This document shows, piece by piece, positions 2,341-64,000 of a DNA stretch of 64,000 nt. Made by a program: the position numbers and the translations under genes. How positions within the stretch are numbered: the stretch's first letter is position 1; each line of letters begins with the position of its first letter. Under the pieces are notes generated by a model. That model worked only from the letters and a program-made list of their open reading frames with translations. It had not been told where the DNA came from and ran no database searches. Origin of the DNA: Basidiobolus meristosporus CBS 931.73 (lineage: Eukaryota; Fungi; Basidiobolomycota); assembly GCA_002104905.1 (NCBI GenBank), contig MCFE01000484.1, positions 3,858-67,857 of the forward strand. Direction: 5' to 3'.

Positions 2341-3392
2341 TGCCTAAATATGGCAATGGTCGACCCATGACACTATCTAGAAATAGAGTGCCGATCCACG
2401 ACAAGATGACTTCTCCGTATATGGTAGGATCCTTGAAATCCCTCTCGATCTGAGAAGGTGAGCCAGATCCAAGTTGATTGGATTGAAAGTTGTGGAAGTC
2501 CCCTACCCAAGATTCCTTCACTTGTCGAGGATAGCGATCGAATCCCAATCGCCATTTGGTTCGGCCACAGACTCTAGGCCTGAAATGGTAAGAGAGTTTG
2601 AATCCTTTGTAAATTGGTCTGCCCTTCCTCGGTTTTCCTCAGCTTTCCTCGGCTATATATTACGAGCCTCATGCCAAGGATCCAGCATCTTCATAACAGC
2701 TCAACAATCCAGTATGGTCAAGATCTCTTCTATCTTTGCTGGTGTCACTGTCGCTGCTGCTGGCCTTTTGGGCCTGGCTGTCCAGGCACTCCCTGCCTCA
2801 ACCACGCCCAGCACTACCCCAAGTCAGACTAGCACTACAGAGGTGTCTGGACCCCATGTCAAGCTAGCCGCTCTGTCTGAGCTCGACAACGCCTGCTCAC
2901 TACAGTTCCGCTTCGATAACGGTCAGTGCACAGACTGGGCTGATGCCCGCTACTACCAACTTACTTGCCACCACACTCAGTGGTGGGGGAATGCCAAGAC
3001 TTGGCCCGCAAGTGCTCGCAACACCGATGGCTGGGTTGTCTCCAACGAGCCACGAGTCCCCTCCATCATCGCCATCCAGCCTGGATACCAAGGGTGTGAC
3101 TCCTATGGCCACGTCGCAGTCGTCGAGAGCATCAACGATGATGGAAGTGTTTACACCAGCAACTGGAACTACATTGAGAATGGACGCGGCGGTCCCTACA
3201 TCACCACATACGTCAACTTCTGGCCCGGAGAAGGGGTCTCCTTCATCTGGTATGAATAGGAGAGATACCCAACAATGGAATATACCATTCAGCAATGCCG
3301 GCATATACCCAACAGAGTATTTACCCAGTAGTGTCATCAATTCCCCGATAAATAAATACTAAAATAGTAAAGTAATACGTTTTGCCAGTGTG
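2341..3392 (+). repeat. 1052-bp direct duplication, copy 1 (carries CHAP gene with promoter and 3' UTR)
   Basis: Matches 4361..5412 (offset 2020) at all but 7 positions in a line-by-line comparison; flanks are unrelated. Confidence 0.97.
2714..3259 (+). CDS. Secreted CHAP-domain protein (putative peptidoglycan amidase/endopeptidase), copy 1, 181 aa, intronless
   Basis: Likely start MVKISSIFAGVTVAAAGLLGLAVQA (signal peptide), then an S/T/P linker, then CHAP motifs GQCTDWA (Cys), WGNAKTW, GHVAVVE (His) and SNWNY; TATA-like TATATAT about 55 bp upstream and AATAAA at about 3350. Confidence 0.85.
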   Translation: MVKISSIFAGVTVAAAGLLGLAVQALPASTTPSTTPSQTSTTEVSGPHVKLAALSELDNACSLQFRFDNGQCTDWADARYYQLTCHHTQWWGNAKTWPASARNTDGWVVSNEPRVPSIIAIQPGYQGCDSYGHVAVVESINDDGSVYTSNWNYIENGRGGPYITTYVNFWPGEGVSFIWYE

Positions 3393-4360: not shown

Positions 4361-5412
4361 TGCCTAAATATGGCAATGGTCAACCCATGACACTATCTAG
4401 AAATAGAGTGCCGATCTACGACAAGATGACTTCTCCGTATATGGTAGGATCCTTGAAATCCCTCTCGATCTGAGAAGGTGAGCCAGATCCAAGTTGATTG
4501 GATTGAAAGTTGTGGAAGTCCCCTACCCAAGATTCCTTCACTTGTCGAGGATAGCGATCGAATCCCAATCGCCATTCGGTTCGGCCACAGACTCTAGGCC
4601 TGAAATGGTAAGAGAGTTTGAATCCTTTGTAAATTGGTCTGCCCTTCCTCGGTTTTCCTCAGCTTTCCTCGGCTATATATTACGAGCCTCATGCCAAGGA
4701 TCCAGCATCTTCATAACAGCTCAACAATCCAGTATGGTCAAGATCTCTTCTATCTTTGCTGGTGTCACTGTCGCTGCTGCTGGCCTTTTGGGCCTGGCTG
4801 TCCAGGCACTCCCTGCCTCAACCACGCCCAGCACTACCCCAAGTCAGACTAGCACTACAGAGGTGTCTGGACCCCATGTCAAGCTAGCCGCTCTGTCTGA
4901 GCTCGACAACGCCTGCTCACTACAGTTCCGCTTCGATAACGGTCAGTGCACAGACTGGGCTGATGCCCGCTACTACCAACTTACTTGCCACCACACTCAG
5001 TGGTGGGGGAATGCCAAGACTTGGCCCGCAAGTGCTCGCAACACCGATGGCTGGGTTGTCTCCAACGAGCCACGAGTCCCCTCCATCATCGCCATCCAGC
5101 CTGGATACCAAGGGTGTGACTCCTATGGCCATGTCGCAGTCGTCGAGAGTATCAACGATGATGGAAGTGTTTACACCAGCAACTGGAACTACATTGAGAA
5201 TGGACGCGGCGGTCCCTACATCACCACATACGTCAACTTCTGGCCCGGAGAAGGGGTCTCCTTCATCTGGTATGAATAGGAGAGATACCCAACAATGAAA
5301 TATACCATTCAGCAATGCCGGCATATACCCAACAGAGTATTTACCCAGTAGTGTCATCAATTCCCCGATAAATAAATACTAAAATAGCAAAGTAATACGT
5401 TTTGCCAGTGTG
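4361..5412 (+). repeat. 1052-bp direct duplication, copy 2
   Basis: Near-identical to 2341..3392. Confidence 0.97.
4734..5279 (+). CDS. Secreted CHAP-domain protein, copy 2 (identical protein)
   Basis: Same ORF as 2714..3259 with only two synonymous changes (CAC/CAT, AGC/AGT). Confidence 0.85.
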   Translation: MVKISSIFAGVTVAAAGLLGLAVQALPASTTPSTTPSQTSTTEVSGPHVKLAALSELDNACSLQFRFDNGQCTDWADARYYQLTCHHTQWWGNAKTWPASARNTDGWVVSNEPRVPSIIAIQPGYQGCDSYGHVAVVESINDDGSVYTSNWNYIENGRGGPYITTYVNFWPGEGVSFIWYE

Positions 5413-46900: not shown

Positions 46901-48873
46901 TGCACAGGGTAAACTCTTTTCTGAAGTCAGGTATTCTTAAGCTTGGCAGCTTAGCTAGTTCATTCCTGAGCGTCTGAAATGCAGTCTCACAGGCTATGTC
47001 TCACCTGTAAGTGTTGTCTTTCTTGAGGGTATCAGTTAAAGGGGCTGCAATGCTTGCAAAGGACTTGACAGATCTCCAATAATAGGATGCCATTCCAAGG
47101 AATGATCTGAGTTCTGATATGCTATGGGGCTGCTTCAAGTTCTTGATAACTTCAACCTTCTCAGGGTCTAAGGTCATTCCTGTGCTAGTCACTATGTGTC
47201 CCAGATATTCAATGTTTTCCTTGAAGAATTCACACTTGGCTAGCTTCCCATATAGCTTGTTCTCTCTTAGTTTCTTCAAGACCTTTTCAATGTGCACTAC
47301 GTGATCCTCTTCTGTCTTGGTGTGTATCAATATGTCATCCAGATAGATTATCACAAACTTGTCTAAGTACTCCTGAAAGACAGTCTGCATCAGCACATGA
47401 ATGTTGCAGGGGTATTAGTGAGGGCAAAACTCATGACCAAGTACTTGTAATGTCCATATCTGGTCCTGAATGCTGTCTTAGGGATATTGTCTGGTTTCAC
47501 CCTAATCTGGTTGTATCCTGACATGAGGTCAATCTTGCTGAAAATAGTGGCTCAATTAAGTTGGTCCAAAAGTACATCATTCCAAGGTATGGGGTACATA
47601 TTCTTGGCGGTAACTGAGTTCAGGGCTCTGTAGTCAATGCACATCCTAAGTGTTCCATCCTTCTTTTTCACAAAAAGCACTGGCGCTCCGCAGGGTGACT
47701 TGCTGGGCCTGATGTATCCTTGCTCCAATAGCTGATCGATTTGTCTCTTCATTTCCTCCAATTCCAATGGACTCATTCTGTAAGGTGTCTTGCTTACTGG
47801 AGGGCTATCTCCTGTGTCAATGGCATGATCCATGTCTCTGACTGGTGGTAGGCTTACAAGCTCATCTGGAAACACATCTGAATATTTCTTAAAGAGAGTC
47901 TGGACCTGCTGAGGTGCTGGGGTAGAGAAATCCTCCTGTAATACCACCGTGAGGAACATATGAGTACCTTTTTTAAGTGCTCTACAGAACTGGGTCTTGC
48001 TAAGCTCACTTGTCTCACACATACTGGAATTGACCAAGTTGAAATCCAGCCTGGCAGGTGATAGCTCATAGGTTTTGTTATCCTTTTGGATCTGAGAAAC
48101 ATGGGTTCTCCAGTTGATTGATGGATTACAACAAAACAGCCAGGTTTTTCCAAGTACAAGGTCAAACTTGCAGTTCCCAAATATATAAGCCTGTAGGTCT
48201 TCTTCATAGTCATTGATCTTCATTCTTACTGGCTGAGTAATACGGTTGATTATGTGAGAGTTCCCATCAGCTGTGGAGACTGAAGTTGATTTGGTAGGTT
48301 CCAAGTTGATTCCAGCTTTCAGAGCAAATTGCTCTGACATGTACTCATGTAATGCTCCTGAGTCAAATCATGATCTTGGCAGGTACTCCATTGATTACTC
48401 CATTCAAGCATAATAGCTTTCCTGAATTTGAGGTCATCTGGGATAGGTATTCTTCTGCCATGTGGAAGGTGAGTTCTGAGTCTTCTTCAAGTTCATCCTC
48501 AATGTTACTATGCTCCATGGCCTCAATGCGGTTAAAGGTTCTTGATGGGTGGTGTCCATTTCTTCTCTGAGGGCAGTACTTTGGATTATGTCCTTGCTGG
48601 TGCCAATTGAAGCAATGTCCTTTCTTCCTGCATTCTTCTGAGGTGGGGTTATTCTGCATAGCATCTATTTCCATTGGTACTGCTTCTGACTGTCTTCTTT
48701 CATAAGGATTGTAGCCTTTTGGATTAGTCACTGTAGGCTTCCCAACTCCAAACATAGCTGAGTCATAGTCAATGGCAATCTTGATGGCTTCTTCAATAGT
48801 CTGAGGTCTTTGATAATTCACTTCCTTGCAAGTTCTTTCTTTCAACCCAACAATAAAGTATTCAACTTGATCC

Positions 48874-51800
48874 TGTTGCAATTTAAGAAGTGATTTGGAT
48901 ATAAGGAACTTATCAAGAAATAGTGATAATAGTTGAACTGTTGTTTATTCATAAAGAAGCTCAGTATTTATACCTTTGTAGAAGTAATACAGCTGCAACA
49001 CTAAGTAGGGAGGGTTTCTCAATATTCAGGAGCATTCTGTAACAGTTTCAGGGTTAGTACATAATGTTTGGGTAATAGTGCTAATTTGATCCTGACTATA
49101 GGGGAATAGTCATAAGATCATATATCTGGAGAAAGTGGCAAAGTTAAGGCAGTAAGTGAGTCCTACAGTGACTAAGACTAGCCTAGAATTGTTAAGTAAA
49201 TTTTTAGCTGCTGAATGATACCAAATAGTCCAATATTTCAACACTCCCCCTCAACTAAATAATTTCTTAATCCCAATTTGTCTCTAAGGATCTCAAACTG
49301 TGGCCTAGCTAGTGGTTTTGTCAATATGTCTGCCACCATTTTGTCAGTTGGGCAGTAAACCAGCTCTACTAAGTTATTTTCTACAGCTTCCCTCACAAAG
49401 TGATGCTGTATATCAATGTGCTTAGTTCTGGCATGATTAGTAGGATTTCTAGCTAATGAAATACAACTTTGATTATCCTTGTAAATACATGTTGGTTCAC
49501 CTGAATTAAAACCTAAGTCTTTGAATAATTTTTGTAGCCATATAGCCTCCTTAGTTGCTTGACATGCAGCCATATATTTGGCTTCAGTTGTAGATAGTGC
49601 CACAGTTGGTTGTTTCTTGCAATTCCAAGTAATAGCTGCACCAGCATAAAGAAATACATAGCCTGTGGTAGAGCGTCTGTCAATCAGATCTCTACCCCAA
49701 TCTGAATCACTATAACCATCAGATTTTTGCCTATTAGCTGCTCCAGAGTATTCCAGTACCATATTTATGGTACCTTGTAGATATCTGAAAATCCGCTTAA
49801 CTGCTGCAATTTGATCTGATCCATAATTCTGCATGAATTGACTGACTATTCCAACTGCCACTGCAATATCTGGACGTGTAGACACCATCAAGTACATTAG
49901 GCTACCGACCATTGATTGATAGGGAAAGTTTTGGTCCATATTTGAGCCGTTTTCATCTGTAACTGGCTGAGATTTGCTTAATTTCAGGTTATTGTCCATA
50001 GGGGTTGCTGCAGGCTTGCAATTTTCCATTTTGAAGCATCTAAGAGTGTCCCTGAGGTACTTAGACTGATTCAGCACAATTTTCTGCGTAGGTATTTCAA
50101 ATTTGACCTCAATTCCAAGAAAATAGCTCAATTTTCCAAGATCTTTCATCTCAAACTTGCTGAAGAGATCTGATTTTGTCTGTTTAAGTGCCACTTGATC
50201 ACTTGTAGCTATAATTAGGTCGTCCACATAAAGAACTAGGATGATCACACCCTTTTTGAGCTGTTTCACATATAAACTGTGATCTGCAGTGCTACGAGAG
50301 AACCCAATTTCCTCTAGAAATGTGTCAATCTTGTTATACCATGCTCTGGGTGCCTGCTTAAGCCCATACAACAATTTTCTAAGTTTGCACACCTTATGGG
50401 GGCTTTTTGGATCGGTAAAACCTTCTGGTTGCTCCATATATATAGTTTCTTGCAAATCCCCATTTAGAAAGGCTGTTCTGACGTCCATTTGGTGTAGATC
50501 TAGACTGTGTACAGCTGCCAGGGCTAGAACTGTCCTAATAGAGTTAAACTTGGCAACCAGAGCAAATGTTTCCTTAAAGTCTAGTCCCTGGATCTGGGAA
50601 TAGCCTTTAGCTACCAATCTAGCCTTGTACTTATCAACGGCACCATATGAGGTTATCTTGATCTTGTAGACCCATCTGCATCCTATTGGCTTTCTCCCAT
50701 TTGGTAAATCTACCAGTTCCCACGTTTTTGCCTTGATCAGTGATTGGTACTCCTCCTGCATGGCTTGTTGCCACTTAGTAGCATCTGGACCTTGCATTGC
50801 CTGTTCCAGATTCTGGGGTTCGGCACATAAGGCAAGATAAGCTTCTTCATGATCATTGGATGTCTGCCACCAGGATCCAGGGGCATTTCTTATTCTGGTA
50901 GATCTCCTAACTGGGATAATCTGTTCTGATCTGGAACTGGTAGAAGTATCTTCCATCTCTGGCTGGATTTGGTACATATCTTCTTCATTTGTGTTGATTA
51001 CATCATCAGGCAGCTGGCCAATGATTTCTGTGGCTTTCTGATCTGAATTCTCCTCAAATACAACGTCCCTGCTCTTGATCAGCTTCTGAATTTTGCCATC
51101 ATACACTCTATACCCTTTAGTATCCTCACAATACCCAAGAAAGATCCCTTTTCTACTCTTTGGTTCCAACTTTGAGCGTTTTTTGTCAGGGATGTGATAA
51201 AAAACATCACTGCCAAAGATCCTGAGGTGCTGGAGATCTGGTTTTTTGCCTGTATATGCTTCAAAGGGTGTAGAATCACGTAGTGCTGTTGTTGGGCATC
51301 TGTTCTTGATGTATACAGCGGTAGCAACGGATTCAGCCCAAAACTTGTAGTCCATTCCCTTATCATGTAGCATAGATCTTCCCATCTCTACTATTGTTCT
51401 ATTTGCACGTTCTGCTACTCCATTTTGCTGTGGAGTATGAGGAACTGTGGTCTGTTGAAGTATACCAGTAGACAAGCAGTATTTTGCAAACTCCTTTGAG
51501 CAGTATTCTCCTCCATTGTCACTTTGTAGTACCTTCAATTTACACCCAGTTTGTGTTTCTGCCATGTTCTTGAAGTGCTTAAACGTCTCTAAAGCTTCAT
51601 CCTTTGTTTTGAGGAAGTACACCCATGTATATCTTGTCTTGTCATCAATAAACGTCATAAAGTATCTCTTGGCTCCAAAGGACAGTGTTCTCATGGGGCC
51701 ACATATGTCTGAGTGTACAATAGCCAATTTTTTGGTGGTATTGATGCCTTCTGAGCTCTTGAAACGTTGCCTAGCTTGTTTGCCATATGAACATCCCTTA

Positions 51801-53561
51801 CAAACATTCAATTTGATCAGAATTGAGTATTTCAGGCCCAAAACAAGCTGATTTTTCACCAATTGGCTCATTTTCTGTTCCCCTATGTGTCCTAGCCGCC
51901 TATGCCACGTCTCCCAGTTGGTTTCATCAGTTTCAGCAATGTTGACATACTCAGGTACAATGATCTTGCATTGTAACTTGTGTGTATTGTGATCTCTGAT
52001 TCCCAAAGCTAATTTTTGTCCATTTTCACTCAATATTGAGCAGCTCAGCTTAGTAAAAACGAATTTCAGTCCCTGAGTAGTTGCTTTACTGACTGAGAGT
52101 AGGTTCTTAGCTATTCCAGGTACATAGAGTACGTCAGTCAGTTTTGCTGTTGTTGCCCCTGAGTTATCACTCATTTTTAGTTGTATAGACCCACTAGTGG
52201 TAGCTTCCAATGCAGAGTTATCTCCCAGATAAACCTTTCTAACGGGAATAGTCTTTAAGTTGCTGAACCAATCCTTTATACCACAAATATGCTGTGATGC
52301 TCCAGAGTCAATATACCATTCATTACTTTGGTTACTTGCACTCTCTTGTACAGTGACAAATAACTGTTCATCAGTAGTTATATGGTTTGCCTGCTCTAGT
52401 TTCTGTTTTTCGTCTGCTTGTTTCTTCTTGCATTCTCTTGCCCAGTGTCCTGGCTTCTTACAGTAGTTACAGCAGCCAGGTTTTCTTTGGTTTTGTTGCT
52501 TTCCCTTCTTTTCTGTATGCCTTTCTGAACTGAATAAAGCATTATCTTCAATTTTCTCTGCTTGATCATTACATCTGAGTTCTTCATGGAGAAGTCTTCC
52601 TTTGACATAGTCTAAAGTCAAGTTGTCTTCTCTGCTTTCAAAAGAAAGTATGAGTGGCTCATACTCGTCTGGTAGGCTGCAAAGCAGACAGAGTATCTTT
52701 TCTTCATCATCTACACCAGCATTAATACTGTAAAGTTCTTCTGCAAGTGTCTCCATTCTGGTAATGAGTTGTAGCATGTAATCATCTGGCTTTTTTCTCA
52801 TGTTGAAGAACTTTTGTTTCAAATAAAGCTTGCTTGATACTGACTTTGCTCTAAAGATCTTCTCTAAGGATTCCCATGCTGCTTTGGCAGTATTTGAGGC
52901 ATGGATTTGTCCAATGAAGGAGTCTTGCACATTGATGCATATTGCATTGCAGGCCTTTCTCTCCTTCTCTTGAAACTTCTCCACATCTTCTGCTGCTCCT
53001 TTGGGCTCAACTTCCTTTCCTGTTACTATGTTCCAAAGCTTTCTTTCCTCAAGGTGGATCTGCATCTTGATTCTCCAAAGTCTGTAGTTCTTCCCATCAA
53101 ACCTCTCCTTTACAGGGAAGATGTTGGTATTGCTTTGTTTGCTGGTAGAAGTCATCTTTAGAATAGATTAAGGCAATCAGGGCTCATAACCTGTTGCAAT
53201 TTAAGAAGTGATTTGGATATAAGGAACTTATCAAGAAATAGTGATAATAGTTGAACTGTTGCTTATTAATAAAGAAGCTCAGTATTTATACCTTTGTAGA
53301 AGTAATACAGCTGCAACACTAAGTAGGGAGGGTTTCTCAATATTCAGGAGCATTCTGTAACAGTTTCAGGGTTAGTACATAATGTTTGGGTAATAGTGCT
53401 AAATTGATCCTGACTATAGGGGAATAATCATAAGATCATATATCTGGAGAAAGTGGCAAAGTTAAGGCAGTAAATGAGTCCTACAGTGACTAAGACTAGC
53501 CTAGAATTGTTAAGTAAATTTTTAGCTGCTGAATGATACCAAATAGTCCAATATTTCAACA
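48874..53561 (-). mobile_element. Young Ty1/copia retrotransposon inserted in the gag of gypsy A
   Basis: 370-bp LTRs 48874..49243 and 53192..53561 with 5 mismatches; TSD GATCC; PBS GGTTATGAGCCC; PPT; host gag rejoins as RMDPLD|QVEYF. Confidence 0.98.
49238..53155 (-). CDS. Copia gag-pol polyprotein, 1305 aa, open
   Basis: CNYCKKPGHWAREC knuckle, WYIDSGAS protease, WHRRLGH..CKGC, integrase HSD..SDNGGEY..E, RT YVDD, RNase H YSDSDW..DN..ADILTK. Confidence 0.96.
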   Translation of the reverse strand: MTSTSKQSNTNIFPVKERFDGKNYRLWRIKMQIHLEERKLWNIVTGKEVEPKGAAEDVEKFQEKERKACNAICINVQDSFIGQIHASNTAKAAWESLEKIFRAKSVSSKLYLKQKFFNMRKKPDDYMLQLITRMETLAEELYSINAGVDDEEKILCLLCSLPDEYEPLILSFESREDNLTLDYVKGRLLHEELRCNDQAEKIEDNALFSSERHTEKKGKQQNQRKPGCCNYCKKPGHWARECKKKQADEKQKLEQANHITTDEQLFVTVQESASNQSNEWYIDSGASQHICGIKDWFSNLKTIPVRKVYLGDNSALEATTSGSIQLKMSDNSGATTAKLTDVLYVPGIAKNLLSVSKATTQGLKFVFTKLSCSILSENGQKLALGIRDHNTHKLQCKIIVPEYVNIAETDETNWETWHRRLGHIGEQKMSQLVKNQLVLGLKYSILIKLNVCKGCSYGKQARQRFKSSEGINTTKKLAIVHSDICGPMRTLSFGAKRYFMTFIDDKTRYTWVYFLKTKDEALETFKHFKNMAETQTGCKLKVLQSDNGGEYCSKEFAKYCLSTGILQQTTVPHTPQQNGVAERANRTIVEMGRSMLHDKGMDYKFWAESVATAVYIKNRCPTTALRDSTPFEAYTGKKPDLQHLRIFGSDVFYHIPDKKRSKLEPKSRKGIFLGYCEDTKGYRVYDGKIQKLIKSRDVVFEENSDQKATEIIGQLPDDVINTNEEDMYQIQPEMEDTSTSSRSEQIIPVRRSTRIRNAPGSWWQTSNDHEEAYLALCAEPQNLEQAMQGPDATKWQQAMQEEYQSLIKAKTWELVDLPNGRKPIGCRWVYKIKITSYGAVDKYKARLVAKGYSQIQGLDFKETFALVAKFNSIRTVLALAAVHSLDLHQMDVRTAFLNGDLQETIYMEQPEGFTDPKSPHKVCKLRKLLYGLKQAPRAWYNKIDTFLEEIGFSRSTADHSLYVKQLKKGVIILVLYVDDLIIATSDQVALKQTKSDLFSKFEMKDLGKLSYFLGIEVKFEIPTQKIVLNQSKYLRDTLRCFKMENCKPAATPMDNNLKLSKSQPVTDENGSNMDQNFPYQSMVGSLMYLMVSTRPDIAVAVGIVSQFMQNYGSDQIAAVKRIFRYLQGTINMVLEYSGAANRQKSDGYSDSDWGRDLIDRRSTTGYVFLYAGAAITWNCKKQPTVALSTTEAKYMAACQATKEAIWLQKLFKDLGFNSGEPTCIYKDNQSCISLARNPTNHARTKHIDIQHHFVREAVENNLVELVYCPTDKMVADILTKPLARPQFEILRDKLGLRNYLVEGEC

Positions 53562-58727: not shown

Positions 58728-61700
58728 TGTTACAAGTCTTGGTATAAGAGTTGCAGAGGAATAGGGAGTTTAGCTAGTATTGTATTCACTAAAACTTGAA
58801 CTGATTTTTATTGAGGTTCCAGCAGCTCCTTGTATTCATTTTGCCAGATCATTTGCAGAATAATTGTATTTCCAAATGTAGACTGTGGCTGATGACTCAT
58901 TTGATTGCATCATCATCATCCAATTAGATCCTACTTAATATATCTATTTCTGTCTGAAAAGGATCTGCTGATTCATTTGCTGACTAATGCTACTGATTTA
59001 ATAGATAATACTGATATACTGATATCCTAAATATATAACTTATTGGTTAGACTAAAAACTAATCTAACTTAAACATTCAAGCGGCTGATCATAACATTCA
59101 CCCCCACTAAAGTTAAGAGGGTTCTCCTGAATCTCTTTTCTTGTGATACCAATATCTTGATGGTTCAGTATTATCAGCAAGCCTTGCAAGCTTGAGTCTG
59201 TCTCTATGAACTAAATTTTCCCGGATATTCCCTTTTTTATCCACTTGTTAGTAAGCTGCAAATGGACATTCTCAGATGATCTTGAATGGTCCTGTCCATA
59301 GTGGCTCAAACTTCTTCCAAGTGTTGTTTCTTAGCAGTACAAAGTTGCCAACTGTCAAAGCTTGTGGCGCTATAGTCTTATCAAATCTCTGCTTCATCTT
59401 TTCTCTACTCTGAGATACTTTGGTCTGTACCTCTTAGCATCTTTGTTCCAGTTGCTGGTGTCTACTTGGCTGACTAAGCTCATCTTCTTAAGCATCTGTA
59501 AGCTTGGGTTGTGTGAGATCTCCTGAAATCCTTGGGTCACATCCATACACTAAGTAAAATGGTGATTGTTGGGTAGTGTTGTGCACTCTAACTCTGCAGG
59601 CAAAAAGTGCTGGATCTATATTCTCATCCCATCTACTGACAGCTCCATTTGCATACTTGGTCAGCATTTTTCCATATAATCCATTAAAGCACTCAGTGAC
59701 TCCATTAGTTCTGGGGTGATATGCCAAGGTTTTCAAGTGATTAATCTGCTGCATTTCCAGGTAAGCCTCTAATGTCTTTGCCATGAAGTTTGCTCCTCTA
59801 TCAGATAACATCTCTACAAGTATCCAAACTTCATCAGGATCTCATGGTAAATGAAACTTGCAACTTCTTGTTCACTAGCTATTGGTACAGCTTTAGCAAC
59901 TGGCCATTTAGTGGCATGGTCAGTTGCTACTAGGATCCAACAGTTGCATTTCCTGGTGGCTGGCAGTCTTCCAATAAAGTCAATTCCCCATCTCTGAAAT
60001 GGTCTTACAGGCTCCAAAGGGAAGAGCTTGGCAATTCTTTGTGGCTGGCCTTGAATGATTTGGCAGTTTGGGCATGCTTTCACTAGCTTCTCAATATCTT
60101 GTTTCATTCTGGGCCACCATGCTCTGGCTTTCACAGGGCTATAGGTTCCTTTAATTCCAAGATGTCCATATCCATTGTGTAGCTTATGTATTAAATCCAG
60201 GCAAACAACGTAAGGACAATAGGCAATAGGGCTTCCATCAACAATCTGGTAGAGTGTTTCATCCTGTACAACAAATTTGCTGGCTTCATCCCGGATTATC
60301 TTCTTTATCCCTTCATCCACCTTGTTAGGAATGGCTTGGTCCTCCAAGTATTGTTGTAACAAGCTAGGCCAATCTGATTCATGCACCAAGCTGAGTTGTG
60401 TCACTTGTTCTAGTCTTGATAAGGCATTAGCAACCGTGTTATTTTTCCCAGCACAGTAGACAATTGCCAAGTCAAATTGCTGAATGTATTCACTCCATCT
60501 TGTCATTCTTCTAGAGAGTACCTTCTGAGTAAATATATACTTGAGGGTGGCATGATCAGACTTTACAGTGCATTTGACTCCTTCAATATAGCAACTCCAT
60601 GTCTTCAGGCAGTGTATTATAGCTAGCATCTCCTTCTCTTGCAGAGGATAGTTTTGTTCTGTTGAGTTCAGTTTCTTGGACTCAAAGGCAACTGGGTAGT
60701 CCTTTCCCTTGTGTTTTTGGCTCAGTACTACACCAATTGCATAATCTGAAGCATCTGTGCACAGGGTAAACTCTTTTCTGAAGTCAGGTATACTTAAGCT
60801 TGGCAGCTTAGCAAGTTCATTCTTGAGCATCTGAAATGCAGTCTAACCGGCTATGTCCCACTTTTAGGTGTTGTCTTTCTTGAAGACATCAGTTAAAGGG
60901 GCTGCAATGCTTGCAAAGGACCTGACAATTCTCCAATAATAGGATGCCATTCCAAGGAATGATCTGAGTTCTGATATGCTATGGGGCTGCTTCAAATTCT
61001 TGATAATTTCAACCTTCTTAGGGTCTAAGGTCACTCCTCTGCTAGTCACTATGTGTCCCAGATATTCAACGTGTTCCTTGAAGAATTCACACTTGGCTAG
61101 CTTCCCATATAGCTTGTTCTCTCTTAGCTTCTTCAAGACCTCTTCAAAGTGTACCAAGTGATCCTCTTCTGTCTTGCTGTATATCAGCATATCATCTAGG
61201 CAGATTACAACAAACTTGTCTAAGTACTCCTAGAAGACAGTCTGCATCAGGGTCATCAATGTTGCAGGGGCATTGGTAAGGCCAAAACTCATGACTAAGT
61301 ACTTATAATGTCCATATTTGGTACTGAATGCTGCCTTAGGGATATCTTCTGGTTTTGCCCTAATCTGGTTGTATCCTGACATGAGGTCAATCTTGCTGAA
61401 TATAGTGGCTCCATTAAGTTGGTCTAAAAGCTCATCAATCCAAGGTATGGGGTACTTATTCTTGACAGTAACTGAGTTCAGGGCTCTGTAGTCAATGCAC
61501 ATCCTAAGTGTTCCATCCTTCTTTTTCACAAAAAGCACTGGTGCTCCCCACAGTGACTTGCTGGGTCTGATGTGTCCTTGCTCCAATAGCTGATCAATGT
61601 GTCTCTTCATTTCCTCCAATTCCAATGGACTCATTCTCTAAGGTGACTAGCTCACTGGAGGGCTATCTCCTGTGTCAATGGCATGATCCATGTCTCTGAC

Positions 61701-61855
61701 TGGTGGTAGGCTTACAAGCTCATCTGGAAACACGTCTGAATACTTCTTCAAGAGAGTCTGGACCTACTGGGGTGCTGGGGTAGCGGAATCCTCCTGTAAT
61801 ACCACCATGAGGAACATCTGGGTACCTTTTCTAAGTGCTCCACAGAACTGGGTCT
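58728..61855 (-). mobile_element. Ty3/gypsy copy C (3' LTR, INT, RH, RT; 5' part truncated), abutting or nested in gypsy B
   Basis: LTR 58728..59096 plus PPT; ORFs 59488..59811, 59814..60830, 60864..61190 and 61230..61634 closely match gypsy A. Confidence 0.93.
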
Positions 61856-62371
61856 AGCTGCCATGCTATCTCTGTGATTGTCTTGATAGCCCACCTAAGC
61901 ATTATCAGATGTGCCTTGAGATCTATCAGTAGTGATCTCTGGCAGTGGGGTTTAGTACTGGGCATTGGTGCTTCAGGTGCAGGGTTCAATTCCCACTGGG
62001 TCCATAATGCTGGTCAAGTCAGTGGTGTAAAAGTAGGCAGGTTTGCAAAACTTTTCTAAACCAAAACTTCATTTTTGTTGCCCAGACCCAAGTAAAAGTT
62101 AGTGTAGGCTGACTAACCCTAAACAGCAGCTTTATTTTTGCACTCCACCTGCTTATGCCCTTAGTGTGGGAGAGTGCTTGATGAATGGGAGCCATATGCT
62201 GATCCCTGGAGTGAGAATACATCACATACACATATCACAGATCTGTTAACATGAGTGACTTTATTCAAAATTGTAGACATTGAGTAATTTAGGTCATGCA
62301 AAACCAGTACAGTACAACTTGCAGCACTGGCATTTACTAATTCTAGCTGTGGGCACTCTAGTCTACCCAAC

Positions 62372-62839
62372 TCAGCAGCAGTCATCATAGCAATCATCCC
62401 AGCATGGGTCACAGCAATCATCATAGCAAGGATCATAGCAGGGATCACAGCAGTCATCATAGCAGGGGTCATAGCAAGGGTCACAGCAGGGATCACAGCA
62501 AGGGTCACAGCAAGGGTCACAGCATGGGTCACAGCAAGGATCACAGCATGGGTCACAGCAAGGATCACAGCAAGGATCACAGCATGGGTCACAGCAAGGA
62601 TCACAGCAGTCATCATAGCAAGGATCATAGCAAGGATCACAGCAGGGATCCCAGCAATCATCATAACATGGATCATAGCAGGGGTCACAGCAATCATCAT
62701 AGTCATTGTATGAGTAGCCTCTCTTCAGAACTTTACTGGTACCTTCAGCTGCCTGTCCATGGGGAAGGGAGAGTGTGGCTCCAAGGAAAAGAACACCAAC
62801 AACAGTAGCCAATGAGAGATTGCTGAAAGAGAACTTCAT
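62372..62839 (-). CDS. Secreted Cys/Asp-rich tetrapeptide-repeat protein (155 aa), function unknown
   Basis: MKFSFSNLSLATVVGVLFLGATLS signal peptide, KR (Kex2-type) at residues 39-40, then GYSYNDYDD, 26 C-(C/Y/W)-D-(P/D) units and CC-stop. Confidence 0.8.
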   Translation of the reverse strand: MKFSFSNLSLATVVGVLFLGATLSLPHGQAAEGTSKVLKRGYSYNDYDDCCDPCYDPCYDDCWDPCCDPCYDPCYDDCCDPCCDPCCDPCCDPCCDPCCDPCCDPCCDPCCDPCCDPCCDPCYDPCYDDCCDPCYDPCYDDCCDPCWDDCYDDCC

Positions 62840-63572
62840 TTTAGCTAAAAGAAAGAGAAGAGTTTGTATGGGAAGCCCACTAATAAGTTGAAGCAAGATT
62901 GAATGATGCTCTACCACTGCTGACCTTTCTGACTTAAATACATTTTCTCCTTGTCAGTCATCACCAATGATAGAGCCTCAGATATGTATCTATAGCACTA
63001 GGGGCATTATACCCACATCAGTAAATCAGGCCCAGCTGCCATCAGTAAATCAGGCCCAGCTGCCATGCTATCTCTGTGATTGTCTTGATAGCCCACCTAA
63101 GCATTATCAGATGTGCCTTGAGATCTATCAGTAGTGATCTCTGGCAGTGGGTTTAGTACTGGGCATTGGTGCTTCAGGTGCAGGGTTCAATTCCCACTGG
63201 GTCCATAATGCTGGTCAAGTCAGTGGTGTAAAAGTAGGCAGGTTTGCAAAACTTTTCTAAACCAAAACTTCATTTTTGTTGCCCAGACCCAAGTAAAAGT
63301 TAGTGTAGGCTGACTAACCCTAAACAGCAGCTTTATTTTTGCACTCCACCTGCTTATGCCCTTAGTGTGGGAGAGTGCTTGATGAATGGGAGCCATATGC
63401 TGATCCCTGGAGTGAGAATACATCACATACACATATCACAGATCTGTTAACATGAGTGACTTTATTCAAAATTGTAGACATTGAGTAATTTAGGTCATGC
63501 AAAACCAGTACAGTACAACTTGCAGCACTGGCATTTACTAATTCTAGCTGTGGGCACTCTAGTCTACCCAAC

Positions 63573-64000
63573 TCAGCAGCAGTCATCATAGCAATCATCC
63601 CAGCATGGGTCACAGCAATCATCATAGCAAGGATCATAGCAGGGATCACAGCAGTCATCATAGCAGGGGTCATAGCAAGGGTCACAGCAGGGATCACAGC
63701 AAGGGTCACAGCAAGGTCACAGCATGGGTCACAGCAAGGATCACAGCATGGGTCACAGCAAGGATCACAGCAAGGATCACAGCATGGGTCACAGCAAGGA
63801 TCACAGCAGTCATCATAGCAAGGATCATAGCAAGGATCACAGCAGGGATCCCAGCAATCATCATAACATGGATCATAGCAGGGGTCACAGCAATCATCAT
63901 AGTCATTGTATGAGTAGCCTCTCTTCAGAACTTTACTGGTACCTTCAGCTGCCTGTCCATGGGGAAGGGAGAGTGTGGCTCCAAGGAAAAGAACACCAAC
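63573..64000 (-). pseudogene. Second copy of the Cys/Asp-repeat gene with a 1-bp deletion at about 63715 (start lies beyond the window)
   Basis: GCAAGGTCAC here versus GCAAGGGTCAC in copy 1; real frameshift or sequencing error. Confidence 0.65.

Follow-up and report, generated by a model that had tools for sequence, protein, structure and literature searches.

Can a reading frame made of little more than one repeated tetrapeptide encode a protein, and if it does, what might that protein be for? The question is raised by a locus in a 64,000-nucleotide stretch of DNA from the fungus Basidiobolus meristosporus CBS 931.73 (contig MCFE01000484.1, positions 3,858 to 67,857 of the forward strand), which was analysed at its full length and is called the window below. 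Near the right end of the window, on the minus strand, an open reading frame begins with a hydrophobic leader, continues through a dibasic site and ends in a long run of units of the type Cys-Cys-Asp-Pro (CCDP), after which we name the gene and its predicted product.

Coding sequence and predicted product

The CCDP gene starts with an ATG at 62839, in the context GCTAAAATG with an A at -3, and stops with a TGA at 62372-62374. Its parts are given below, together with two flanking signals that were assigned from sequence only.

62372..62839, minus strand: coding sequence of CCDP gene copy 1, 155 codons plus TGA, with no intron needed
62750..62839, minus strand: signal-peptide-like N-terminus, residues ~1-28/30, placed by hydropathy, with an approximate cleavage site
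62720..62749, minus strand: short pro-piece, residues ~31-40, ending in V-L-K-R, a dibasic Kex2-type site with an aliphatic P4
62375..62719, minus strand: predicted mature chain of 115 aa, consisting of GYSYNDYDD, 26 C-[CYW]-D-[PD] tetrapeptides (62381-62692) and a final CC
62934..62940, minus strand: TATTTAA, a TATA-like box that starts 101 nt upstream of the ATG
62260..62265, minus strand: AATAAA, a candidate polyadenylation signal 107 nt downstream of the stop

The 155-residue product reads, in order, MKFSFSN, LSLATVVGVLFLGATLSL, PHGQAAEGTSKVLKR and the 115-residue chain. The leader consists of MKFSFSN, the hydrophobic core LSLATVVGVLFLGATLSL and PHGQA; the core spans residues 8-25, with 9-residue Kyte-Doolittle means of up to 2.67, and a polar stretch comes next. 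The KR of the precursor occupies residues 39-40, and Kex2-type proteases prefer Lys-Arg with an aliphatic residue at P4. The sequence-only reading had proposed this architecture, a signal peptide, a propeptide ending in KR and a chain of tetrapeptide repeats, and the analysis supports it, the N-terminus being signal-like. The open reading frame, the KR, the mature length and the residue and tetrapeptide counts that it gave were all reproduced when we recounted them.

The predicted mature chain has a mass of ~13.0 kDa and a calculated pI at or below 4.05. Cysteine makes up 37% of it (43 residues), followed by Asp (35), Pro (20), Tyr (12) and Trp (2), with one residue each of Gly, Ser and Asn and no Lys, Arg or His. 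Its 26 tetrapeptides comprise 15 CCDP, 5 CYDD, 4 CYDP, 1 CWDP and 1 CWDD and correspond to a 12-bp array of 25.8 copies at 62384-62693 (Tandem Repeats Finder). A twelve-residue super-unit, CCDP-CYDP-CYDD, is repeated at both ends and flanks a homogeneous run of eleven CCDP, the chain contains ten consecutive CCDPCC units with the CCxxCC tetracysteine pattern, and 20 Asp-Pro bonds recur with a strict period of 4.

Evidence that the CCDP frame is coding

Since stop codons are missing from four of the six frames that cross the repeat, an open frame alone is no proof of coding. Within the 12-nt unit, positions 1, 2, 4, 7 and 8 are invariant among the 26 units, and all five are positions at which a change would be non-synonymous; the differences that do occur lie mostly at third positions. 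The variation of a minisatellite would be indifferent to frame, but in the CCDP frame 20 of the 37 differing codons are synonymous and 17 non-synonymous, where ~17% synonymous would be expected from random single changes, and in the other stop-free frames the synonymous fractions are 0/40, 0/37 and 9/32; these counts are not independent events, because the units are related by duplication. Just two kinds of amino-acid change are seen among the units: position 2 of the tetrapeptide can change from Cys to Tyr or Trp, and position 4 from Pro to Asp, the latter being confined to units with an aromatic residue at position 2.

Contigs from four public sequencing runs were aligned to the window. Among these runs, X1 comes from the sample that was assembled, X5 carries a different organism label and X7 is from a further sample labelled as the same species. 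Ten variants are listed inside the coding sequence in X1, X5 and X7, of which nine are synonymous third-position changes and one is Cys to Tyr, a result that partly restates the variation among units because contigs can sit out of register in the repeat. The 49 codons of the non-repetitive N-terminus are in frame with the CCDP repeat, and a stop codon follows directly after it.

The strongest point in favor of a coding CCDP frame is an apparent diverged paralogue in X7. As the relatives are known as short contigs, the aligned middle of each uses the window's letters, and the loose ends alone are the contigs' own. The X7 contig (408 nt) matches the repeat and GYSYNDYDD and then diverges, and its loose end translates in frame. 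Ahead of GYSY, the prepro of this paralogue reads QAANGGSGVQKR, compared with QAAEGTSKVLKR in the CCDP gene. DNA identity between the two is 17/30, six of ten residues are kept, including the KR and the P4 Val, and four of these six are written with different codons; the QAA...V-x-K-R of the pro-piece is thus retained through synonymous changes.

It had been recognized at the outset that the frame might be a minisatellite open by chance. The silent-site bias in the CCDP frame, and the pro-piece and KR kept in relatives from other runs, speak against this, and the CCDP open reading frame is in all likelihood a real gene for a secreted repeat protein.

A small family of related sequences

A shorter type of paralogue was found in X1, where KR is followed by WYNSYGYGDDCC...WEDDCCCDDD (its start, as read, is KR and then WYNSYGYGDDCCDPCWDDCYDDWEDDCCCDDD...), and a variant in X5 reads ...SYGYGDDCC...WDDDDCCCDD. 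The short paralogue, with KR followed by WYNSYGYGDDCCDPCWDDCYDD..., has a 14-residue string in common with the C-terminal part of the CCDP protein. Like the CCDP protein, this short Asp/Cys/Tyr peptide has a KR, then a Tyr-rich start, then Asp/Cys-rich repeats that include DDCCDPCWDDCYDD, and its genes, like the CCDP gene, form a tandem array and are confined to Basidiobolus. It differs in being much shorter, in having no long CCDP run and in starting with WYNSYGYG rather than GYSYNDYDD, as far as its partial sequence extends. Taken together, the contigs of X1, X5 and X7 and the CCDP gene define a putative small family with one plan: a leader, a KR, a Tyr-rich start and Asp/Cys repeats. The CCDP gene has each of these features and lies, as the plan also has it, among tandem genes. 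From the sequences compared, the family looks restricted to the genus Basidiobolus.

The tandem array

The CCDP gene lies in a head-to-tail array, of which the window contains one complete unit and part of a second:

61856..63057, minus strand: array unit 1, 1202 bp, the CCDP gene with its flanks
63058..64000, minus strand: array unit 2, which ends with the window at the end of contig MCFE01000484.1

Each 1.2-kb unit carries a single intron-less gene with a TATA-like box and an AATAAA of its own. Because unit 2 ends at the contig end, the assembly breaks inside the array. Unit 2 differs from unit 1 only by two single-base deletions within G runs, one opposite 61947 and the other opposite 62514, and the second of these shifts the frame of the unit 2 gene copy (coding sequence from 63573 to beyond 64000, with the start codon off the contig). 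At the deletion opposite 62514 the depth in X1 is 74, compared with tens of thousands around it, and at the deletion opposite 61947 the sole contig restores the G. At least one of the two deletions may thus be an assembly error, and it may also be that some array units are dead, given the frameshift in unit 2.

How many units does the genome contain? For contigs that match the unit exactly, the word depths are 2033 and 2254, and for diverged retrotransposon pieces they are 84-243. If the single-copy level is ~75-100, the unit depths suggest roughly 20-30 units, an estimate in which the single-copy depth is assumed and word depth is not the same as copy number.

The left edge of unit 1 adjoins a gypsy-type retrotransposon fragment (reverse transcriptase ORF at 61230-61634), and the whole right half of the window consists of copia and gypsy DNA. 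In X1, word depth sums to ~280,000-330,000 over the gypsy-type sequence at 61700-61853, to the left of the array. This is far above the depth of the array, and the fragment belongs to a very abundant retrotransposon family of the genome. Exactly at the junction of the units, at 63016-63066, there is a perfect direct repeat of 24 bp (2.1 copies, CATCAGTAAATCAGGCCCAGCTGC), which may mark the recombination point behind the array.

Public annotation of the locus

The last 4.8 kb of the contig carry a single gene-index call, which overlaps the CCDP gene on the same strand in a different frame:

62161..62706, minus strand: public gene call, a 181-aa hydrophobic ORF in the A-V-I-L frame, out of the CCDP frame

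Because none of the 40 codon differences among the units is synonymous in the frame of this call, we judge it to be very probably a wrong-frame gene model, which was probably chosen as the longest ATG-initiated ORF. As the reference annotation calls the wrong frame, the CCDP family is invisible to protein-database searches and to secretome surveys. The CCDP product is absent from both protein collections searched, look-ups by exact product gave no match for the CCDP protein, for the His/Ser frame of the plus strand or for two ORFs in the flanks, and cluster look-ups gave none.

Searches for homologues, families and structures

At E<=0.01 a Pfam scan of the CCDP protein returned only a sub-threshold MSSP match (16.3 bits, against a cut-off of 21.2), and NCBIfam returned none. 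In a word-indexed protein search, the whole protein gave low-complexity matches only, with E no better than 8e-6. Homology searches gave no candidates for its N-terminal 55 aa and no scoring match for the wrong-frame ORF at 62161..62706. Matches from phmmer against 1.84 billion representatives were rejected as homologues, since they are period-4 repeats whose identity of 24-25% amounts to one residue in four; the best Cys-containing match among them is P0103, a bacterial CYDPCEEP protein with SpaA/SdrD-B domains. The best score in the ESM Atlas was 0.68, below a useful level, and the top row was the Phytophthora M96 family. Only circumsporozoite NANP/NVDP repeats were matched by sequence in the PDB (E 1e-13), and these matches are compositional and periodic rather than homologous. 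AlphaFold2, run without an alignment, gave a helical hairpin that we rejected, as every fourth residue is Pro, the models disagree with one another and the best had a pLDDT of 68.8, with the other four at 40-52. Literature searches for CCDPCC and for cysteine-rich proteins or metallothionein in Basidiobolus found nothing on the CCDP protein. The statement of the sequence-only reading that it recognized no family is thus borne out in Pfam, NCBIfam, the PDB and the Atlas, and the putative CCDP gene family is without a described relative in the databases and literature searched.

Runs of CCDP do occur elsewhere. When metagenome contigs were scanned for (CCDP)3C, 34 loci emerged (L004-L037), with runs of three to eleven units, and the Basidiobolus leader, KR or Tyr-rich start was present in none of the 34. 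The proteins with such runs include lipoprotein-like ones (L004, L009, L013), low-GC Gly-rich membrane peptides (L006, L015, L036), high-GC proteins rich in Cys, Gly and Pro (L005, L007, L029, L030) and ~350-aa proteins with a C-terminal CCDP run (L008, L024, L033). In seven loci that were scanned (L004, L006, L011, L014, L020, L030, L033), the Cys-rich run matches neither a Pfam nor an NCBIfam family, and the only domain of L011, a TIG domain, lies outside that run.

Bacterial-type proteins such as P0001 and P0003 (with a weak BclA_C-like tail), P0103, L004, L006 and L030 resemble the CCDP protein in their CCDPCC or CYDPC strings of 3-11 units, and the run often follows a signal or lipoprotein-like leader. 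They differ from it in their N-termini, domains and organisms, which are unrelated, and their Cys-rich runs likewise match no Pfam or NCBIfam family. As the runs recur in unrelated, mostly bacterial-looking proteins, the motif is convergent and not unique, and its recurrence in bacterial surface-type proteins suggests that it has a general property that is unstudied. The sequence-only reading did not mention this recurrence, the tandem array or the wrong-frame gene call.

Comparison with known systems

To which known proteins is the CCDP protein most similar in design? Fungal metallothioneins (Cup1, Crs5 and Cryptococcus CMT1/2), with the CUP1 array, resemble the CCDP gene in very high Cys content, repetitive Cys motifs and head-to-tail amplification. 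They are cytosolic and have no secretion signal, whereas the CCDP precursor has a signal-like leader and a KR pro-piece, and its cysteines are arranged as CC-D-P rather than C-x-C. No metallothionein family model of Pfam matches it. Metallothioneins are small, with ~30% Cys and few or no aromatics; the CCDP chain has 115 aa and 37% Cys, but also 12% aromatic residues (12 Tyr and 2 Trp).

The mammalian high- and ultra-high-sulfur keratin-associated proteins share a Cys-Cys-x-Pro periodicity with the CCDP protein, and their CCxP repeats give a disulfide-cross-linked matrix. Unlike the CCDP protein, they are vertebrate, intracellular, without a signal peptide and not acidic; the CCDP gene is fungal and encodes a signal-like leader, and its product has no Pfam match to Keratin_B2 or Keratin_B2_2. 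The NANP/NVDP repeats of the Plasmodium circumsporozoite protein, which form Asx-Pro turns, have the same period-4 x-x-[DN]-P design, although they contain no Cys and belong to unrelated biology. By analogy, the match hints that the x-x-Asp-Pro units of the CCDP protein might form turns.

Two further systems resemble the CCDP gene in secretion and organization. The M96 proteins of Phytophthora are secreted, contain Tyr and are of low complexity; their genes form tandem arrays with tens of copies, and the proteins are proposed components of the sexual-spore wall or matrix (PMC5999078), although they are His-rich and Gly/Ser/Tyr-rich rather than rich in Cys, Asp and Pro, come from an oomycete and are not homologous. 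Fungal Kex2-processed repeat proteins (KEPs), in which this same strain is the richest (PMC7329392), share the signal peptide and KR site. KEPs are defined by a signal peptide and at least three repeats bounded by dibasic sites, and the CCDP protein is not a KEP by this definition, because it has a single KR, at 39-40, and no dibasic sites between its repeats. It is best placed with those secreted repeat proteins that are rich in cysteine, low in complexity and encoded by tandem arrays, and among these its composition is extreme.

Possible roles of the CCDP protein

What could such a protein do? The sequence-only reading had offered three roles, a metal sponge, a cross-linked wall or adhesive polymer and a calcium template, among which the sequence data do not discriminate. 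The reading we favor is that the locus represents a real, genus-restricted, tandemly amplified gene whose product is a Kex2-type-processed extracellular cross-linking or matrix component; on present sequence data, this combination is possible, and we stop short of calling it probable. The precursor would enter the ER and lose its signal peptide, a Kex2-type protease of the Golgi would cut it after V-L-K-R and the mature chain would be exported as a ~13-kDa polyanion with a net charge of ~-35 and 43 thiols. Its backbone would most likely be a chain of Asx-Pro or beta-turns, a globular fold being unlikely because Asp-Pro or Asp-Asp closes every tetrapeptide. Disulfides would link CCDP chains to one another or to partners, Tyr-based links might add to these, and the carboxylates of the Asp residues could be binding sites for cations or for partner proteins that are polycationic. 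The resulting material could be wall, spore coat or adhesive, and many near-identical gene copies would serve its production in bulk.

An extracellular cross-linking or matrix role appears most likely because the secretory route is oxidising, the number of cysteines is odd and the chain ends in CC. These same features, with the tolerance of Cys-to-Tyr/Trp changes and the recently expanded central run, suggest that bulk chemistry matters more than a precise fold. The CCDP runs in bacterial proteins of lipoprotein-like, spore-like and envelope-like types also point to a surface or material role. Both the organism and the closest organizational parallel offer context: CBS 931.73, with 43 Kex2-processed repeat proteins, ranks first of 1461 fungi in their number (PMC7329392), and the Phytophthora M96 genes are present in >40 copies, are induced >100-fold on mating and undergo concerted evolution (PMC5999078).

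Could the thiols instead bind metal? On such a reading, the CCDP chain would be an extracellular or vesicular binder of soft metals and metalloids, in which reduced CC-x-x-CC would chelate Cu(I), Cd, Zn, Hg and As(III), and the array would be a CUP1-like dosage amplification. The CCxxCC tetracysteine pattern binds biarsenicals and soft metals, and the ten consecutive CCDPCC units of a chain that is 37% Cys fit this pattern; CUP1 of yeast is an amplified tandem array, which the ~20-30 head-to-tail units recall. In addition, the fungus inhabits the reducing gut lumen of herptiles (PMC9391592). Nonetheless, we regard metal binding of this kind as unlikely, since no Pfam metallothionein family matches at E<=0.01, 14 aromatic residues in 115 are unusual for metallothioneins, a literature search on metallothionein in Basidiobolus gave nothing relevant and a signal peptide would direct the chain into the ER, an oxidising compartment in which thiols are normally converted to disulfides, whereas classical metallothioneins are cytosolic. 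A different chemistry would make the chain a precursor. Asp-Pro bonds are acid-labile, and the 20 such bonds with their strict period of 4 could release P-C-[CY]-D peptides in an acidic gut, or tyrosinase could cross-link Cys and Tyr, through cysteinyl-DOPA, to give a polymer that resembles a pigment. Among the indicator families of the Zoopagomycota secretome are secreted proteins with tyrosinase domains (PMC9391592), and precursors of Kex2-processed peptides are unusually numerous in the strain (PMC7329392). This idea is purely chemical, and it seems very unlikely, as no dibasic sites separate the units and the array is surrounded in the window by transposons, with no modifying-enzyme gene adjacent.

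An altogether different explanation is that no protein is made and that the locus is a non-functional 1.2-kb satellite containing a 12-bp minisatellite that is open by chance and has an ATG upstream. Stop-free frames in four of six cases, the number and near-identity of the array units, their location within transposon-rich DNA and the frameshift in unit 2 are what such a satellite might display. We consider this explanation very unlikely, because the silent-site bias is confined to the CCDP frame, a non-repetitive 49-codon prepro precedes the repeat in frame and its KR and neighbours are kept in a paralogue at 17/30 DNA identity. In addition, a stop codon comes immediately after the repeat, the TATA-like box and the AATAAA lie at sensible distances and the shorter paralogue type has the same plan of KR, Tyr-rich start and Asp/Cys repeats in two organisms.

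A further, more novel reading can be envisioned, although we think it somewhat unlikely. Here an exported poly-tetracysteine (CCxxCC) polyanion, encoded by a CUP1-like array, would constitute an extracellular thiol reservoir, acting either as a sponge for soft metals and metalloids in the reducing herptile gut or as the thiol- and Tyr-rich partner of a polycation in a coacervate-type glue or spore-wall material. If this reading is true, the CCDP protein would represent a new class of fungal protein, one that either forms extracellular material or handles metals. If the protein is made at all, it would be among the most cysteine-rich exported proteins known, written in a four-letter alphabet and encoded tens of times. 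Several questions would then become testable: by what means an early-diverging gut fungus makes its spore wall or adhesive, how it deals with extracellular metals and how the ER folds a chain that carries 43 thiols.

Other features of the window

Each array unit also contains a string that resembles the T-arm of a tRNA, GGGTTCAATTCCCAC, at 61979-62003 and 63180-63204 on the plus strand. A tRNA identity of the GGTTCAATTCC piece was rejected, since ARAGORN found no tRNA, Rfam gave none at E<=1 and the piece folds no better than shuffled sequences. A contig of X5 matches the T-arm-like part of the unit at ~82%. The piece may be an old SINE-like sequence or a conserved flank.

Toward the left end of the window, two tandem copies of a 181-aa gene lie at 2714-3259 and 4734-5279 on the plus strand, in a 2020-bp unit whose copies are 99% identical. 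Both products start with a signal-like leader and contain a CHAP domain (PF05257, E 1.8e-16), and both genes are annotated in MCFE01000484.1. These fungal genes carry a bacterial-type peptidoglycan-hydrolase domain, possibly as a result of horizontal transfer.

Finally, we note a copia-type LTR retrotransposon at 48872-53489 on the minus strand, with a 1305-aa gag-protease-integrase-RT ORF at 49238-53155 and direct repeats of 300 nt at 48872-49171 and 53190-53489. Since the ORF is uninterrupted and the repeats are 98% identical, the element looks young and is possibly active.
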